From: Oikopleura dioica
Lineage: Eukaryota > Animalia > Chordata
Direction: 5' to 3'
Length of the DNA: 64,000 bases
Assembly: GCA_907165135.1 (NCBI GenBank)
Contig: OU015568.1
Location: 4,030,001 to 4,094,000, forward strand
Under the pieces are notes generated by a model, which saw only the letters and a list, made by a program, of their open reading frames with translations, was not told where the DNA came from and ran no database searches. Shown in pieces: positions 43,082 through 53,200 of the stretch (the stretch's first letter is position 1; each line of letters starts with the position of its first letter). Position numbers and translations under genes: made by a program.

Positions 43082-44599
43082 TTATCGAGATCTGGAGCGG
43101 GATCGCGATCGAGAGCCACCTCGTCGGCCAGTGTCTCTACCTCTATCGCGAGAGTCTGAGCGGGATCGTCGTCGCGCCGCGGGTGATCGCGATCGGGAGC
43201 GCTTGGCGCTGCGGGAACGCGATCTTCGTCCACGAGATCGGGAGCGCGATCGTTTGGGAGCACTTCGTGATCGCGATCTACGTCCTCGAGAGCGAGAGCG
43301 CGATCGAGAGCGGGATCGGCTCTGGGAGCCATCTTCCTAAAGCGAGGAGGTCAGAGCGGAATTGGCGAGGATAAAAATACTTACAGTGATCTTCAAGCGA
43401 AGTCGTCGACCGTTGACATCTTCGCCGTCGAATTTTTTGAAAGCTTTTTAGAAGTTTTAAACTGTGAGCAAAATTAAACATGAAAAAGACCAAAAAGATA
43501 CGACGAAAAGAAACTCGAAGGCTTTTAATCTACTTTTATCTAGTATCAGTTGGGATGATGTAAAACCGTTCCTGCGTGAAGATCATCAGATGTAGCGAAG
43601 CAGACTTCTCCTCTGTTCTTACCCATTCTCTGATGGGCGTCGGTGTAGGTGACCTCGCCGGCCTTGCGCATCATGTCCTTGAGATCGGCCCAACTAAATT
43701 CCAAAAGGTGTGACCAGAGAGTTCAGAATCAGTAGTGAGAAGAAGAGTCCGAAATCACGGATAGGTTTTTAATCACGGATTGGGGGCAACCAAGAATCGG
43801 CACAAGCGACTTTGAACCAACGGACAAAACTGGATAGTTCCATAGTTTTGGGATTTGGATTTTCAAAAAGGGAACGAAACGGGCCACTGGCACCACGGGT
43901 GAATGTGTCCAACGGGGAAAACAAACACAACGGACCCAGAGGAGCAGACTCAGTCGCGACCAAAGCGCAAAAGAACGGAACACGGATTATCCACCCTGAT
44001 TGAGAAATTAACATTTGAAGCGAAATTTAGGTAGTCAAACCCGTCACAAGGCGTTAGAATTTTATAGCTGAATGGATGAAATTTTGGTGAAGAAGCTAGC
44101 TAGTTTCCTAAGCTAATATGGTGGGTACCTGATTCGGCTGGACAAGTTCTCGACTTCGAGAGTGTATCGAGTTCGGTGGGGGCGATTGGAGCCCCGTCGA
44201 TCGTCACGGCCACCTCGGTAGCCGCCTCGGTCACGTGAGCCAGATCGTCGAGATCGAGAGCGCTAGAAGTTTTGATAGAACAGGGAGAGGAATAAGCGGA
44301 CTTACGTTGGCAAGCTCAAGTCGAACTCGCTCGCCACAGAGGGAGCTTCCATCAAGATCCTTGATTGCGTCCTTTTTTATGGTTCTTTCTATGTTTTAGA
44401 AACGAAATTGTGCAAGCGATTTTCGATATATTTAGAACCGTTCCTCGGCGTCTCGTCGATCATCAAAATCAACGAATCCGTATCGATCCCGGAGACGGAT
44501 CTGCGTGACCTTTCCGTACTTGTAGAAGAAGTCTTCAATGTCTCGATCACGTGCTCGGTCGCTCAGACCTCCGATGAACACTGTTGTTCCGTCACTCAT
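43082..44599 (-). CDS. SR splicing factor, SRSF4/5/6 type (RRM, RRM2 with SWxDLKD, RS tail)
   Basis: Exons 44599-44444, 44371-44306, 44262-44129, 43693-43572, 43443-43385, 43336-43082. VFIGGL...YGFVDFDDRRDAEDA, VENLSSRIS|WADLKD, RS repeats, TAA. Confidence 0.95.
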
Positions 44600-44753
44600 T
44601 CTCTAAACACTTGTTTTTCGCCTTTTAAAAACGGTTTTCCATATGTTGAATGTCGAGTGTGAAGGTATTTGAAGAGAGACAGTGATCAAGTGTGCGTTTT
44701 TTTGAGTTGCTTGAACTTGAGGATAATTAAATAGATAAAATAATGATTAAATT

Positions 44754-47731
44754 CTAGTAGCTTCGGCCAGGCGCCATTCCGATGAACGCGCCGTAGTTAT
44801 CTTCGGCAGTGCGCATTCCCGTGACCTGATGCTGTGGGACGGACATGGGGTTGTTCAACGCTCGGTCTAGCGTTTCCAGGTTGTCTGGGTGGGTCATTTC
44901 TGCTCGTCCTCGGAGGATTGAAGGACCAAGAAGCTTTGATAAAGAGGCTAGGCACTCTTCCGCAGCGGCTAAAAATTTTTTTAAGAAGAAGAAAGTGTGA
45001 AATTCAAACCTTTCGTTAATAAAACCGGCGAGTTCGCAGCGTAGAAGAGAATGTCGAAAGATCCAACGAGGCAGTTTTTAAACGTCTTTTTGCCAACAGC
45101 TTCTGCAAACAAACTGATTTGCTTGGAAAACGTCTCGTGGAGCTGCTGATGCGCGTCAAAGTGCCTGTTCGAGCGGATCTGATCGCAGCCGAGGGCAAAT
45201 AATCGACAAATTTCGTCGGCTTGGTTTGGTTTCGAGACCTTTGCGCATTCGACGAGGAGGATGAGGGAGCCATCAGCGCGTTCCCACGGCTCTTCTTTGC
45301 GAGTAAAGCTTGTGCAGGAAGAGCAGCCGCCACCAGTGGGCTGTTTTGCTTTCATCTAAAGAATGGTAGCTTTTTTCATCGTCGTTTTCAATACCTTTGG
45401 AGCCAAAGACCCGCAAGAATACATCGTGCCGTTCTCCTGCTTATCCTCATCTTGCTGAATTCTTCGAACAACTCCGAACTGGCCGGGTCCCGGCTCAAGT
45501 CGACCAAACTTCGAGTTATTTTCCGACTGATCTTTCAAGCCCTTGAAGCTTTCTTCTAGAAACGCGACGACTTTTGGAAAGACTTCGCCGTTGACTGACA
45601 GTAGTTTCGCGACAGCTACCGCACCTCCTTGACGGACTGATGCGATCGGGTCGATGACGTTCTCCATGAATTTCTCGTAAAGAACTAAAAGAAGTTTTAA
45701 TGCATTTGAAATCAATAACGACTAACCTTGATGCTTGGAAAAGGTCTGTTCGGGCAGAGCAGAGACAAAGTTCCCCGCAGCAATGCAACATGCATCTCTA
45801 ACAGGCCAGGAGTCGTCGCCAAATGTCTTGATCAAACTGTCAAGCAAGACTTCCCATTGACCCTCCAAGGATGCTGGCGAGCATTTTGAAGCAAGTTCAG
45901 CAATACAAGCACAAGCTGCTTCCCTCACAGCGTGGTTGTCAGCTGCGATTTGAGCGCTGTAGAAAGATGTGAAGGAAGCGATGTTGGATTCAACAACCTG
46001 AATAAATGAATGATGGATATTTGACCCAGAGTCTACCTGAACACCCTTTTCCGGAAAGAGAAGGCGCCATGTTTCTTGATTATGAATTCTAACTCCAGCG
46101 GCAATGTAATATCGATTGATACAAATTGGCGGGAGAAGCAAAGAGTAATATTTTGCTCGTTCTTCTTCGTTGAGCGCTTTAAGAAAAGCTCTTGCGGCTG
46201 TAGAAGAGGCCATTCGAACTTGTGACCAGTTGTCCGAGATTCCTTTGTGGATCAACGAAGCGAAAGAGGGAACGAGATCGGAGTTTTCAAGCGTCACGGA
46301 GAGGATCGCAGAGGCGATGTAGAACGCGCTCTCGCGGATGAAACGGTTCGAGTGGCAGGTGCATTCGTTGAGCAAGTCGAAGAGCTCCTGCGAAACGACT
46401 TTTGAAGGATCGTTCTTTTCGAAGAGCAACTTCATTCCGTTCATCGACGTTTCCAAATGTCTCCATCCCGCGGACTCGTGAAAGATCTCCTGCGACGAGA
46501 GACCACGTGACTTTTGACCTTCCAAAATCTTTTGCCGGACGACTTCATTTTGCGGCAAATCGGCGGCTCCGGGATCTCGCGCTAAATCACGACGGATCAG
46601 TTCCAAAATTCGACCAAAAGCGACGAAGAACTGGGCTTCGCCGAGTTTTTTGACCAAATCCGCGAGAAGAGCCGCGGATGATGATCGGACGCGGCTTTCT
46701 TTGTGATCAATGTGGTCGAGAGTCAAGACGAAGACTTTTTTCAACTCGGCATCGGAGAAAACTGACAGGAGGTTGGAACACGCGGAGAGAAGCCCTTAAG
46801 ATTCATAAATACAAAAACAGTTAATATTCCTGCAAATTCAATTGAATTAAAGTTTATTACCTGCAACTGCTTCCCAAGAAATTTCCTCTTGGGCAAATTT
46901 TTCAAAAATCAATTTTTTGAATTCATCTTTGTTCTCCAACTTCTTCACTTGCAAAATGGCCCTTTCTCGTTGTAATCTCTGGCTGCTACATAGACGAGTC
47001 ACGCTAACTTCCCCAAGACGCTAACTTCCCCAGACGCTGACTTCCCCAGACGCTAACTTGCACAACCTTGGGGAAGTTAGCGTTTTGGGGAAGTTAGCGT
47101 CTTGGGCAAGTTAGCGTCTTAAATGCGTGGGCGATCCGTTGAGCGTTGAATGGCTCTTTCAGCATGTCTTAGTCTGGTAGACAGTCAGTCGTCTCTTAGA
47201 ATCTAACCTCAACCTCTCCTCGTGAATAGCGGTCATATTTTCAATTTCTTTTGAGCAAATTTAATTTAACGTTTTGAAATAAAATTTTGTACTCCGGGAG
47301 TACACTTATTTTGACAGTCAATGTCAAAATTTCTGAGCTCTTATTATATAAAATAAGATAACTTTGATTATTTCGAAGCGTTATTATTAGAACATTAATC
47401 CCAAAAAATGCCTGAATTCTCAAAGCTCTGTCTAAATGACTTAGAAATAATCGCTCCTACTATTACTTTCTGAATACTGTATTCAGTGTTCCGAAAATTG
47501 AGGCTTCAAAAAATTTCGAGAAAAAAATATTAATAATATAAATTAGAAGAAAATAATTTTCTCTAACAGGAAACTTTGACGCTAACTTGCCCAAGACACT
47601 AACTTCCCCAGACGCTAATTTGCACAACCTTGGGGAAGTTAGCGTTTTGGGGAAGTTAGCGTCTGGGGAAGTTAGCGTCTTGGGCAAGTTAGCGTGACTC
47701 TACATAGACCGGTGATTATCTCAGCCGCCAT
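44754..47731 (-). CDS. HEAT/ARM-repeat protein; coding exon 1 interrupted by a MITE
   Basis: ATG 47731. Removing the element and one TSD gives MAAEIITGLCSSQRLQRERAILQ...WEAVA|GLLSAC..., in frame with ORF 45722-46744 (HEAT motifs ESRVRSSSA, DNWSQVRMAS, DNHAVREAAC, DSWPVRDACC). Later exons contain YSCGSLAPKM...EPWERADG; TAG at 44754. Confidence 0.85.
46996..47700. mobile_element. 705-bp MITE with terminal inverted repeats and a 9-bp TSD (Mutator-like)
   Basis: Ends gagtcacgctaactt...aagttagcgtgactc. Perfect direct repeat tacatagac at 46987-46995 and 47701-47709. Subterminal 15-17 bp gacgctaacttcccca repeats occur in both orientations at each end. Confidence 0.95.
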
Positions 47732-50212
47732 TTCTCCCCTCGATTTGGAAAAAAAGTGAAATTGCGAATTTGAAGAAAAGAAATCGAAGTGGCGCGGCCA
47801 ATCGGAACAAGCGAGAGCTCTTTAGTGAGTCATTCTCGAAACTCGGAATTTCAATTTCTCGATGAAATCGATTTTACGCTCGAATGAATTAGCAAACAAC
47901 TTTATATTTTGCAAAGCGTAGAAATGATTTTTGCATTAAAATTATCATAAAATGATTAAGACGAAATCTCAATCGAAAAAACATCGGTCGCGCTTCGTTC
48001 TTCAGATCTTGTTACTGTAAGAATTACTGTAAGCTACAGAATAAGAATGATCAGATCCGAAACTTGATGAATATCTGTCATCCTTTATCTTTTATTTTTG
48101 GTGTTTTATCTAATTAATTATCTTTAATCTCGTGCGAAAAGATTCAGTGACAGGCTGTCACTGACAGCTTGAAAATGCTTCAGCCTCAAGCCTTTAGGGT
48201 CCTTGATGCTTACAGTATTTCATACAACGACAATGTCCAAGATCGACGTTTTTGTTAACATCATTTGAGTAGATTTTCAAAGGAAATATCACTTTGAAAA
48301 TACAAAAATTAGTGTCACTTTCATTTCCACTTTGAAAATTTCAAAGGGGTCATTTCAAATTTCAAGCATTGGCGAGCCCTGTCGCCTGCTGACAGTTTTG
48401 TGGATTCGGAACCTATTTAGACTTTGGGAGTCAAATCCGGTTCTCTTTTCATCTTGCCGCACTCTTCGTCGATTTTTCCCACGTAGTAAAGGATCATAAA
48501 AGGGTTTTTTATGTATTGGAAATCAACAAAGAAAAGAACTCATTTTTCTTCTGTTTATTGGTGTTCTCATAAGTTGCAGTATCTGCATATTTTCCTTTCC
48601 ATTAACCTTTCCCAACAGCATCCTGAATCTGCCGAGTCTGACAATATGTCTCCTGTCTGTTAGACAACTGGGAGCCCCCTGTCCCTGCTCCGGAACAGTG
48701 CTACTTCCAGCTGCAGATTCTCCTCGCTCCTCAAGCTGCACAAGTTTTGTATTTTTGTTTTCCATAGCAACTTCGTGAGATTCAGACTGAGATATTGTTT
48801 GACTTGGAAATGGAAAAAATTTCGATATCGTCAGTTGAGAGGGCACTATCGTTGCGTGAAGAGGACGCAAGCTTGAAAGCAAGGAGGAAATACAAAAGTG
48901 GAAAGAGAAACGCTTTCTAGGGACTTTCTCAGGAACCAAAAGAGGAAATATTTCGGACAAAAAGCTCGTTTGTTATTTTATAAAAAAAGATTTTCCAAAA
49001 GATTCGTCGCTTTTTTAGGCTTCAGAATCGAATATACCAAAGTTTTCTTCGAATTTTTTGTTCTGTAAACATTTATTCTTGTATAAAGAAAAAACTTATC
49101 AATCAGTATATCTGACAGTATGAAATCGAAATTACCCAAAAGGTTCAATTTTTATGACATCGCCCTAATTTCCTTCCCCCAAAGCGTAACAGGTCCCCAA
49201 TTTGTCGCAAGCAATAATTTGCATCTCGAAAACCTGCAGCAAATGATTGGATCGGTACGCGGTTCAACCGGTTTTCTGCTCGACCTGAGTTGGATAAACA
49301 CAGGCCCGTGACCTGAAATGGCTTAGAGGTCCTAAAATACAAATTGTAGAGCTTGAGAAGTGGGATGGAGCGGGAGGATCAGAGGGATCCGTGGGAGAGC
49401 GCGTGGAAACTGATCTGAAGGAGTTTCATTTCCACAAATTTCATGCTCTTTAGTTGAAGAAAAATACACTCAGTTCGGGATCAAAAAGGAAGAATTTCAA
49501 TCAACGGGAATTGATTATTGATGAGAGTCTCATCTTGTATCTTTACAATTTTAGGATGTTCGCCGACAATCCTCATCCTTCCTCTCATATTTCTCAGGGT
49601 CTTCTGCTTACCACGAAATCTTCTTGAAATATACACAGTCAGCACTATCGTCCTTTTAGAATCCTTCAATAAATATTTCATTATGAAGAATCTCCTATTT
49701 TTGTAAGGCAATGAATATTTAAAATGTACAAACAAAATTAAAACCTCAAAGGCCGGAAATATTAAGCTCAATTTTCGCTCCCCTCAATTTGGAGAGAATT
49801 TTATTAGAGCAAGGAAGTGAAAATGACAAATTGAGGCGCAATTGGCGTCAAGGGTTTCCTAGTCGACGGAAGTTGACGATTTTCATTTTTGAAACAGATT
49901 GATTTGGCCCTATTTGGCGTTTATTTTCGCGCTATGAAGTGGCCTTGTACAGTAGCGATGGCTGTAAAAAGGGATGAAAAGGAGTATTTACGCTTCTTAG
50001 TTCCGAAATTTGCATTGTTTTCTGGCTTTTGCACTTCCGAGTGAGTATCTCCTTAGATCGCCCGCACTTCCTTTTGGCGGGCTATTTAAATTTCTCAATA
50101 ATGCGCAAATTTCAAAAACATTCGAAAGCGCAAACAATAAGGCTCTAAGGTTGTACCTGCATGAATTTTTCTATTTGATGATTTAAATGCTACTTCCTCT
50201 GGCTCAAAAGAG

Positions 50213-53200
50213 GTCACGTGCATTTCCTTGAATGAGAAATTTTCAAAAAAGAACAAAGTTATTTGAACAAAAGAGCGAAAATGTTAACCGGAAAGGAAAA
50301 TTTCCGAAATTTGGCGGTGAATTCGCAAGCTTTACAAATTTCAACAAATGCTAATGGTCAGGAAATGGGGCATCTTATGGGGGTCACGTGATCGATAAAT
50401 AAATTTTCCTTGATAAAAAAGTCTTTCTCTTTTGCTTCATTTCGTTGCCATAATCCCGAAATGACCCGGATGCACTTACTCTAAAGAGCGAAAACTCGGA
50501 AAAACTCCTTCGAGAAAAACTGATTACCAGTGGTGCCGATGTCCATCATGCTCTATAATTTGGTCTCGGTTACCGACCGCTTTTGGTTTCTCACGGTCAC
50601 GTGCTCCTTCCGGAACCGCCAGAGCCGGAAATTCGCTTCCGCCTTTCGATTTTCAGCCCGTCGTCTTTTTGGCTCTAGAAAATTGTGTTTTTGACCGCTT
50701 AGATAGGCAGATAAGATGATCGGATAAATTTCACAGAAAAAAAAAGAAGATTTCAAAAACCATATTTATATTTTTTGAGTTAGCCATTCGGTTTTTCAAA
50801 GATTTCAGTAAGATGATAAAAATATTTTAGAAATATAAATATTTCCATTGATGAATTTATGGGCATAAAATAACTAAGAATCAATTATATCTAAAAAAGC
50901 CAAGTTAGCTGATTCAGGTTCAGTGGGTTAAGTTAGGTGCTTGTCAACATTAGTTGAAGTGTACTTTTGAAAGAGGCTTTCTTTCCCAGGGCTGCTCAGG
51001 TGATCGGACCGTGTATCGAGCGAGAAGGGTACTCAGTCTTACGCCTCGAGTTCAAGTATCAGCCGATTGTTTCGAGCACCTCTTGTCCGTTTCCGCTTTC
51101 CAACACTCTTTTGCTTTCCCGCGTTTTTTTTTCCGAACAATTAACATGTGTCTTTCACCATCAGCTTGATCATTTTGTGTCTCAATGTTTTTTAATTCTG
51201 TTTTTTATTTTATCATTTTTTTAATCGTCTTAAAAAAATTTTTTTTAAGAAGAAAAAAGACGTTTCGGAAAAGGTTTGTTGTTTGATTTTGATAATTTGG
51301 GGCAATTTCCGCTTCAGAAATATTTCCAAATTATCCAAAAGTGTGCTTCGCTGTGTGGTGCCGCGTCATTTTCAAATACCCCACGTGATCATCAATCAAA
51401 CTTCCTAGATTTTTGTCGACGAGAAAAAGAAGGTCGGTATCGATCTACTTTCATACCAACTTTGTTCAAATTTTTGACTGGCAATCAACAATCTTCGGTT
51501 CATTTTCCGATGTTTTCTGGACAATCTTGGTCACGTGAGAAGATTTCTAGCCGACAATCTGAGCAAAACCGTCGTCTGAGAAGCAGGAAGAGTTCGGAAA
51601 TGCTTACAAATCCATTAACAGTTATAAAAAGTGCTATCACTGGCGAGAAAGTCAAACCCAGGCGTCTTCTTGACGCCGCCAAGACTGGTTGATAAAGAAA
51701 AAACTAGCTGAAAACAATGCTCTACAAAAGCTATTTATAATTTAACACCGGCTGAGTTTTCCCCCTCGGATTTGTATTTTTTTACCTTTAGCAATTTGCG
51801 TCACGCGTTCCGGCTCTGCCCTGTCGAGTATGAAAAATTGTAGCGGAAATTGATAACTTTATATTTTTTCTTACTTTTGGGAGAATCACTTTAATAACTA
51901 ATAGTTATATCCGGCTGCGGAGCGGAAAATTAACGCCAAGAAGAATTTCAGTTTCAAAATACAGAAAATTGAATTTGAGATTGTCTATCTCAGATCGTGC
52001 ATCTGACCACTGACTAAGGGTATCCAAGGGTTACCCTTAGGCGGCCTAAGATTGGCCTTTTTGTAAAGGGTTACCCTTAAGTTCGAGTTAAGAATCGGAT
52101 TTGCAGCTTGTTTTTTATTGATTTTGACCCTGACTCAGGCTTTCTACACAGGTTTCTACACAGGTAGTTTGTATATGGAAAAGTATTAAGCCAAGAACAA
52201 CAAATCAACTTAATGGGCGTACGCTTAATCGTCCATAAAATAAAGCAAATAATTAATAAGGGCGGTGAGTGTCGGAAATTACGAGCTGCTCAATATTTTG
52301 AGCAAACTGGTGCAAGTGCCATAAGAGGCGCGGAAATCAAGCGCGCATTATTTTTTTAAAAACGCCCTTTATAGGACCGCTAAATGAGTATGTATCTTAC
52401 TTATCGTCTTTTTCTTGGCAAGAATGAGGATAGAATTATGGAGCAAAATATATTTACACTGCGTTTTCGGAACTTCCGAGTGGCCGCGCTTTGAAGCAGG
52501 AGAAAATAAGGGTACTCTCTCACGTTCCTTTACTTTCTTTAGCAGGATTTGCATTTTCCAAAATTCCTGAAAATTTACCGTTTTGTTAGTTTATTTTTCC
52601 TGCGATCATTTTGTTGAGAATTACCGGACTCGGACGCCCTTCAATTAGAATGAGTTTGGACGCATCCGCTTGCGCTTCCGATGAATTGATCAATCAACTT
52701 GACGAGTGAAAATTTATACAAATTTCGAGCAACCAATCTCCGCTTTAAATTTGCTTGATTTAGGGGGCGTCGCTTATTCAGTAGCCTTTATATTGCTATT
52801 CTCTCGTTGATTGTCATTGAGAATATTCGAGATTATATCATGGTCTATTTTCGGATAATTACCAATGTCTCCATTTCTTGAAAATAACATTCTTTTTAAG
52901 ATAAATTATTTAGATAAATGTGGCGTGATAAATTTAGTAAAACAAATTCTCATCTTCTTTTCAATGAAGTAGACAATTTGATAGAAATCGGTAAGGCGGG
53001 TTCTTTTTCCGTCAAAACTACAAAATTGCCGCTTTTTGTCGCTCGAATAATCACCAGAATGGTCTTCTCGGTCCTTAACTCGAAAGAAATCAGTGTACTA
53101 AACCTGTGTCAGGGTTCTGAAAATGATTTGATAAAAGCCGCTCTTTCCTTCGTTCAAATCCATTCCAGTATCCTGAATCAGGTTTTCTACAAAGGCACCT

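Follow-up and report, generated by a model that had tools for sequence, protein, structure and literature searches.

A young insertion of a non-autonomous DNA transposon, a miniature inverted-repeat transposable element (MITE), interrupts coding exon 1 of g9583, a HEAT-repeat gene, in the Okinawa lineage of Oikopleura dioica. The gene lies in a stretch of 64,000 nucleotides of contig OU015568.1 (positions 4,030,001 to 4,094,000), which was analysed as a whole and is called the window below. The insertion is polymorphic and its boundaries are exact; the ancestral open reading frame (ORF) is recovered when it is taken out, and the candidate splice sites around it are weak and mostly buried in stems. 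On balance we favour the view that this is a recent, segregating insertion which truncates the protein at codon 20 and makes a null or hypomorphic allele. The fate of the RNA of the filled allele and the loss of function are what we infer from these observations.

The element is bounded by two terminal inverted repeats (TIRs) at 46996-47048 and 47648-47700, each of 53 nt and 96% complementary, whose arms begin GAGTCACGCTAACTT. It is flanked by perfect 9-bp target-site duplications (TSDs); since the TIR opens with the same base, G, that would continue the duplication, 10 nt can be read as a direct repeat. No coding capacity was found in the element, the largest ORFs being of 74 and 60 aa and matching no Pfam family. 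Two terminal modules of about 125 nt each, built of three to four GGGGAAGTTAGCGTC-like units in one direction followed by three to four in reverse, enclose an AT-rich core. As RNA, the 5' module (47578-47700) is predicted to fold into a hairpin of -80.7 kcal/mol (z = -13.9) and the 3' module (46996-47120) into one of -87.3 kcal/mol (z = -11.2). When the whole element is folded, the two modules are predicted to pair end to end over more than 100 bp.

One copy of the element is present in the 64-kb window. The contig depth over it was about 10-20 times that of its flanks in both DNA runs examined (X1 and X2), depth being a rough guide, and contigs with unrelated flanks stop exactly at 46995/46996 and 47700/47701. 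The extra depth, together with these contigs ending at the termini, shows that the element belongs to a multi-copy family and confirms its boundaries independently. Two metagenome scans, one with the element terminus and one with the subrepeat pair, gave no matches.

Both states of the site were recovered. In run X1, contigs span both junctions of the filled site with 0 mismatches, at a depth of about 8 that equals the flank depth. In run X2, made from a second sample of the study behind X1, 46985 is joined directly to 47700 by a contig of depth 83.6; it skips 714 nt, and 9 letters are common to both sides of the joint. A filled site in the one and an exact empty site in the other mean that the insertion is young and still polymorphic. 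On the gene side of the site (46379-46928, about 550 nt), X2 contigs of similar depth match the window with 0 differences. Upstream of the site, the empty haplotype of X2 departs from the window at about 12 positions in some 100 nt (47739-47797, in the promoter and 5' untranslated region, UTR), which may mark a point of recombination or a highly polymorphic promoter beside the site.

A 17.8-kb stretch of OU015568.1 (O. dioica OKI2018_I69, PAR scaffold, GCA_907165135.1) agrees letter for letter with the reverse-complemented window, and the interrupted gene is annotated there as g9583 (CAG5080421.1, 633 aa) on the minus strand. It encodes a conserved HEAT-repeat protein of about 680 aa (Pfam HEAT, 1.5e-10). 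Its family, HEAT-repeat proteins of about 650-700 aa, extends from choanoflagellates and sponges to amphioxus and ascidians; most members bear the name 'uncharacterized' or 'DNAAF5 TPR-repeat domain-containing'. Excision of the element with one TSD leaves the open frame MAAEIITGLCSSQRLQRERAIL / MAAEIITGLCSSQRLQRERAILQVKKLENKDEF…WEAVA, up to the donor at 46861/46860. Left unspliced, the frame reads MAAEIITGLC RVTLTCPRR through the element and then meets TAA; the next in-frame Met lies about 115 codons into exon 2. The initial annotation, made from the letters of the window, had described a MITE with a perfect 9-bp TSD after codon 10, in coding exon 1 of a HEAT-repeat gene whose reading frame returns on excision. 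The TIRs, the empty site of X2, the two frames and the Pfam match uphold that description.

Table 1. Features of the g9583 locus, in order along the gene, and scores of the proposed splice sites (positions in the window).
Feature	Position	Strand	Evidence or score
First coding exon of published g9583 model, MMDIGTT, donor CTG/GTAATC	50528..50549	-	Annotated model CAG5080421.1
Putative ancestral 5' UTR and proximal promoter, inverted CCAAT box at 47802-47798	47732..47803	-	Similar ~50-nt 5' UTR of Bergen-lineage cDNA; promoter role inferred
True coding exon 1, 5' part: ATG at 47731, codons 1-10 and first base of codon 11	47701..47731	-	Matches orthologue start MASEIIAGLC
Upstream TSD copy, 9 bp, GTCTATGTA on gene strand	47701..47709	-	Direct repeat; 9 letters shared at X2 joint
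Non-autonomous TIR element (MITE), 705 bp	46996..47700	.	TIRs; DNA contig of run X2 without exactly the element and one TSD
5'-end terminal module (gene sense), 16-17-nt subrepeats of GGGGAAGTTAGCGTC type in both orientations, self-folding	47578..47700	-	RNA hairpin (predicted)
TAA ending unspliced frame, codon 20	47672..47674	-	Read-through frame
AT-rich core, 457 nt, partly common to other copies	47121..47577	.	Contig depth ~2 to 25x flank depth
3'-end terminal module (gene sense), same subrepeat palindrome as 5' module	46996..47120	-	RNA hairpin (predicted)
Downstream TSD copy, 9 bp, GTCTATGTA on gene strand	46987..46995	-	Direct repeat; X2 joint
True coding exon 1, 3' part (…CSSQRLQRERAIL…WEAVA, then donor)	46861..46995	-	80-84% identity to Bergen-lineage proteins
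Natural intron 1, 66 nt, GTAATA…CTTAAG, donor CAG/GTAATA at 46861/46860	46795..46860	-	L002 cDNA collinear across intron 1
g9583 exons 2-6, four introns of 39-42 nt	44754..46794	-	Identical to CAG5080421.1 from residue 8 onward
Proposed donor	47703		Score -1.0; 56th percentile of all GT
Proposed donor	47698		Score -3.3
Proposed acceptor	47021		Score -5.5
Proposed acceptor	47008		Score -8.6

The ancestral state was read from other appendicularians. Bergen-lineage mRNAs of the Tara metatranscriptome (L002-L004; proteins P0190 and P0313) start MASEIIAGLCSSQRLKRERAIL…, and the two halves of exon 1 in the window align end to end to Bergen-lineage cDNA with an overlap confined to the 9-bp repeat. 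The orthologue mRNAs are collinear across the insertion site (…GLC/SSQRL…). GLCAxQRLxRER is retained in more distant appendicularians, in one of which (L007) the first 254 residues lie in a single ORF; the insertion site is thus conserved coding sequence that never held an intron. The cap-complete L002 cDNA of the Bergen lineage has a 5' template-switch G run and a 50-nt 5' UTR resembling 47732-47790, and carries neither a spliced leader nor an upstream exon. This 5' structure would place the ancestral promoter directly upstream of 47731. At exon 1 itself the Bergen genome offers an N gap in the OdB3 scaffold and an ENA contig (L005) that begins within intron 1.

In the mechanism that we propose, a non-autonomous DNA transposon of a multi-copy family has inserted recently into codon 11 of g9583 on one Okinawa haplotype. 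Transcripts from the gene's own promoter, presumably about 50 nt upstream of the ATG, would run into the element 80 nt after their 5' end and meet a stop at codon 20, and none of the splice sites that flank the element in a usable frame appears strong or accessible. Given the stop at codon 20 and the lack of strong, accessible splice sites, a loss-of-function or strongly reduced-function allele is the most likely outcome. The filled allele would segregate beside an intact empty allele, the haploid reference having happened to take the filled one.

Whether the element can be spliced out was approached by enumerating all combinations of donor and acceptor, from the ATG to the end of exon 1, whose use would give back a stop-free frame. 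Fourteen such routes use GT-AG, and 92 use the pairs accepted for O. dioica (GT/GA/GC/GG-AG, GT-CG and GT-AA; PMC11067885). Two of the GT-AG routes, 47703 to 47008 (+18 nt, adding FSVTRL) and 47698 to 47021 (+36 nt), had been named in the initial annotation as signs of an intron in the making, the other reading offered there being a null allele. Both exist as described; with 14 GT-AG and 92 accepted-pair routes at hand, two of this kind are expected by chance. On a rough and indicative matrix, trained on 16 short introns that were inferred within the window, the scores of their sites resemble those of random GT or AG, at or below the median (Table 1), the natural intron 1 reaching 11.5 at its donor and 9.2 at its acceptor. 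Three of the four sites (47698, 47021 and 47008) lie within the stable stems of the predicted hairpins of -81 to -87 kcal/mol. Two routes out of 14 (or 92), with random-like scores and three of their four sites in stems, lend no support to an intron in the making. Among cryptic sites, donor 47709 scores highest (2.8), as does acceptor 46986, which lies in the downstream TSD (4.8); this pair removes 10 nt too many and shifts the frame.

Exact removal of the 714 nt can be written in 11 registers, with ends GT-TC, GT-AT, GA-TA, AG-AG and the like, none of which is an accepted pair. By these sequence rules, an exact removal that restores the original mRNA, of the type known from the appendicularian Fritillaria borealis, would not take place. 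In that species MITE-derived non-canonical introns have been documented (Henriet et al. 2019, Curr Biol; reviewed in PMC11282704). The two cases are alike in that a miniature element with TIRs and TSDs sits in appendicularian coding sequence, that its position is specific to the lineage, and that pairing of its termini could join its ends. They differ in that splicing has been demonstrated in F. borealis, mostly with AG-AC or AG-AT ends and with modified U2AF and small nuclear RNA machinery (PMC13326754), whereas the element in g9583 is known from DNA. The pairs accepted in O. dioica (G[TACG]-AG, GT-CG and GT-AA; PMC11067885) permit no exact removal of it.

That the element is nevertheless a newborn intron, removed by the spliceosome through cryptic sites in the TSD, TIR or flank to leave a small in-frame indel near residue 10 and a working protein, is considered unlikely. 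The Fritillaria precedent speaks for it, as do the existence of stop-free routes that restore the frame, the loose donor signals of O. dioica, the lack of an empty allele in X1 and the end-to-end pairing of the termini, which would bring both junctions together. Against it, the sites are of random quality and largely buried, the top cryptic pair is out of frame, and the insertion splits a conserved N-terminal motif (GLC/SSQRLxRER). The element would also make an intron of about 700 nt with G-rich acceptors, where introns here are typically 36-66 nt long with T-rich acceptors. Finally, the hint-based annotation contains no such junction.

Some observations weigh against a truncated protein as the end product. 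The splice-site matrix is a rough one, and O. dioica donors are loose and degenerate, intron 2 of g9583 itself using CAG/GTAGAC, near the proposed GTAGAG. Run X1 gave no sign of an empty allele or of single-nucleotide polymorphisms in the flanks, and the X1 animal may have been homozygous and viable, in which case the insertion would be tolerated. Two oligo-dT RNA runs of 2026 (X11 and X12) yielded 0 and 1 reads over 46300-47950, the single read being 90-95% alike, which is too few to judge splicing; the scarcity probably reflects another O. dioica lineage or weak expression of the gene. All that three protein searches recovered was the annotated model and sequences of the Bergen lineage; none came from transcripts of Okinawa animals. 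Two further runs from the study that supplied the DNA runs (X3 and X4) assemble into contigs that total 31-38 Mb and contain fractions of 0.54 and 0.46 of the query words, about the query's exonic share; they might be RNA libraries of the Okinawa culture.

The published model of g9583 is an AUGUSTUS prediction guided by hints from RNA-seq of the laboratory culture (PMC8008620). It begins with a mini-exon of 22 nt (7 residues), located 2.8 kb upstream of the true ATG and joined over 3.7 kb to the exon-2 acceptor. The model thereby bypasses the true exon 1 and the element, and 54 conserved N-terminal residues (47731-47701 and 46995-46861) are missing from it. The model includes the 39-nt intron 2, which is in frame and free of stops, and this suggests that RNA hints covered g9583. 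No splice around the element was found in the model, and the missing canonical junction speaks weakly against efficient GT-AG removal. Transcripts of the empty allele would map with a non-canonical 714-nt gap that a predictor cannot use, so that an invented or opportunistic upstream start is to be expected. The far-upstream first exon is therefore probably a work-around of the gene predictor, an annotation error caused by the MITE.

If the upstream structure were real, the gene would escape the insertion by starting near 50.6 kb and splicing 50528 to 46795, or by using donors 47709 or 47703 with the exon-2 acceptor, and would yield a protein shortened by about 47-54 N-terminal residues. Such a bypass seems quite improbable to us. 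CAG5080421.1 has exactly this structure, in frame, and intron hints from RNA-seq went into it (PMC8008620); near 50.6 kb there are motifs like those of promoters (CACGTGAC and clusters of GGAA), and donors 47709 and 47703 are in phase 1, as is the natural exon-1 donor. However, the 5' end of the cap-complete Bergen-lineage cDNA falls about 50 nt ahead of the true ATG, with no exon further upstream, and an intron of 3.7 kb is highly atypical for a genome with a median of 49 nt (PMC8008620). The residues that would be lost are conserved across appendicularians, and the natural donor 46860 (11.5) should outcompete far-upstream donors for the exon-2 acceptor; a predictor unable to bridge the gap must, besides, invent a start. 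As to the upstream patch itself, two copies of CACGTGAC (50381-50390 and about 50594-50603, minus) and clusters of GGAA/TTCC flank the mini-exon; the patch is promoter-like and may belong to the regulatory region of the neighbouring Ets gene.

A misplacement of the element by the long-read assembly is scarcely credible: repeats such as this multi-copy element can be misplaced, but X1 contigs cross both junctions without mismatch at flank depth, and the perfect TSD with the exact empty site of X2 is the signature of true transposition.

The superfamily of the element can be suggested from its ends. The 9-bp TSD falls within the 9-11 bp of Mutator/Foldback elements, a length not unique to that superfamily; Merlin, among others, also yields TSDs of about 9 bp. 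A 9-bp TSD combined with termini built of subrepeats presumably points to the Foldback/Mutator group, and our guess is that the termini are Foldback/Mutator-like. Drosophila FB elements likewise have a 9-bp TSD, termini of short tandem subrepeats (16-17 nt in the present element) and a strong potential to fold back; the present element differs in that each terminus is itself a palindrome. An Rfam match to MIR4374, a MITE-type plant microRNA precursor, at 47005-47114 (minus) was rejected, scoring 46.9 bits against a gathering score of 105. The same segment forms a near-perfect terminal hairpin of about 50 bp, which within the pre-mRNA could feed small-RNA pathways.

Downstream of g9583, on the same strand, an SR-type RRM gene follows 154 nt after the stop codon and a RING-WD40 gene after another 401 nt; upstream, an Ets gene lies on the opposite strand with its start at 52918. 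The downstream spacing falls within the distance-only operon definition used for O. dioica (PMC11067885), and the earlier suggestion that g9583 heads a probable operon holds as far as gene spacing goes. At 44599-44625 (minus), an acceptor-like GTGTTTAG (TTTAG) stands 3 nt ahead of the ATG of the SR-type gene; this acceptor and the spacing fit spliced-leader trans-splicing of an operon-internal gene. Within g9583, the intron at 45998-46036 (minus; 39 nt, CAG/GTAGAC…TATTCAG) has a length that is a multiple of three and no in-frame stop, and would add 13 residues if retained; the orthologues are without them.

In the Bergen lineage, the orthologue has an intron 1 of 390 nt or more, which holds nested palindromic MITE-like sequences (OdB3 FN653334.1, L006:5915-6303). 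The annotated OdB3 start (MAER) lies within one of these sequences, exon 1 being lost in the N gap. The MITE-like sequences indicate that the same gene head was struck independently by small elements in another lineage.

Elements that create introns, or introners, are known from Micromonas, dinoflagellates, Styela clava and others (Huff 2016, Gozashti 2022/2025, PMC12130899). These too are DNA transposons that land in exons, where TSD and element end could supply splice sites, and the element in g9583 likewise lies in coding sequence at a position without an ancestral intron. In introners, however, every copy carries or co-opts good splice sites and many spliced copies occur in genes, whereas the window holds a single exonic copy with weak, buried sites. 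With ordinary loss-of-function alleles caused by segregating transposable elements, the insertion shares its youth, its exonic position, the premature stop and the presence of an empty allele in the same population; only the known high intron turnover of the organism sets the g9583 case apart so far. As an exonic MITE insertion it adds one more case to a kind already known.

Rapid turnover of introns has O. dioica as its classic example. It is doubtful that the Okinawa O. dioica neutralises the exonic MITE at the RNA level, with a stem of about 120 bp joining the TSD copies and a tolerant U2 spliceosome removing the element in frame or exactly; if this were true, the birth of an intron would be on view here, in a population where the filled and the empty allele occur side by side. 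For the reference, the finding means that the N-terminus of CAG5080421.1 is probably wrong through the element, the true start of g9583 being at 47731. The two haplotypes match over the gene side of the site (46379-46928) and diverge just upstream of it. With a young exonic MITE in a conserved gene, and filled and empty alleles in the same lineage, the locus is a clean natural experiment, ready for use as a test of intron birth.

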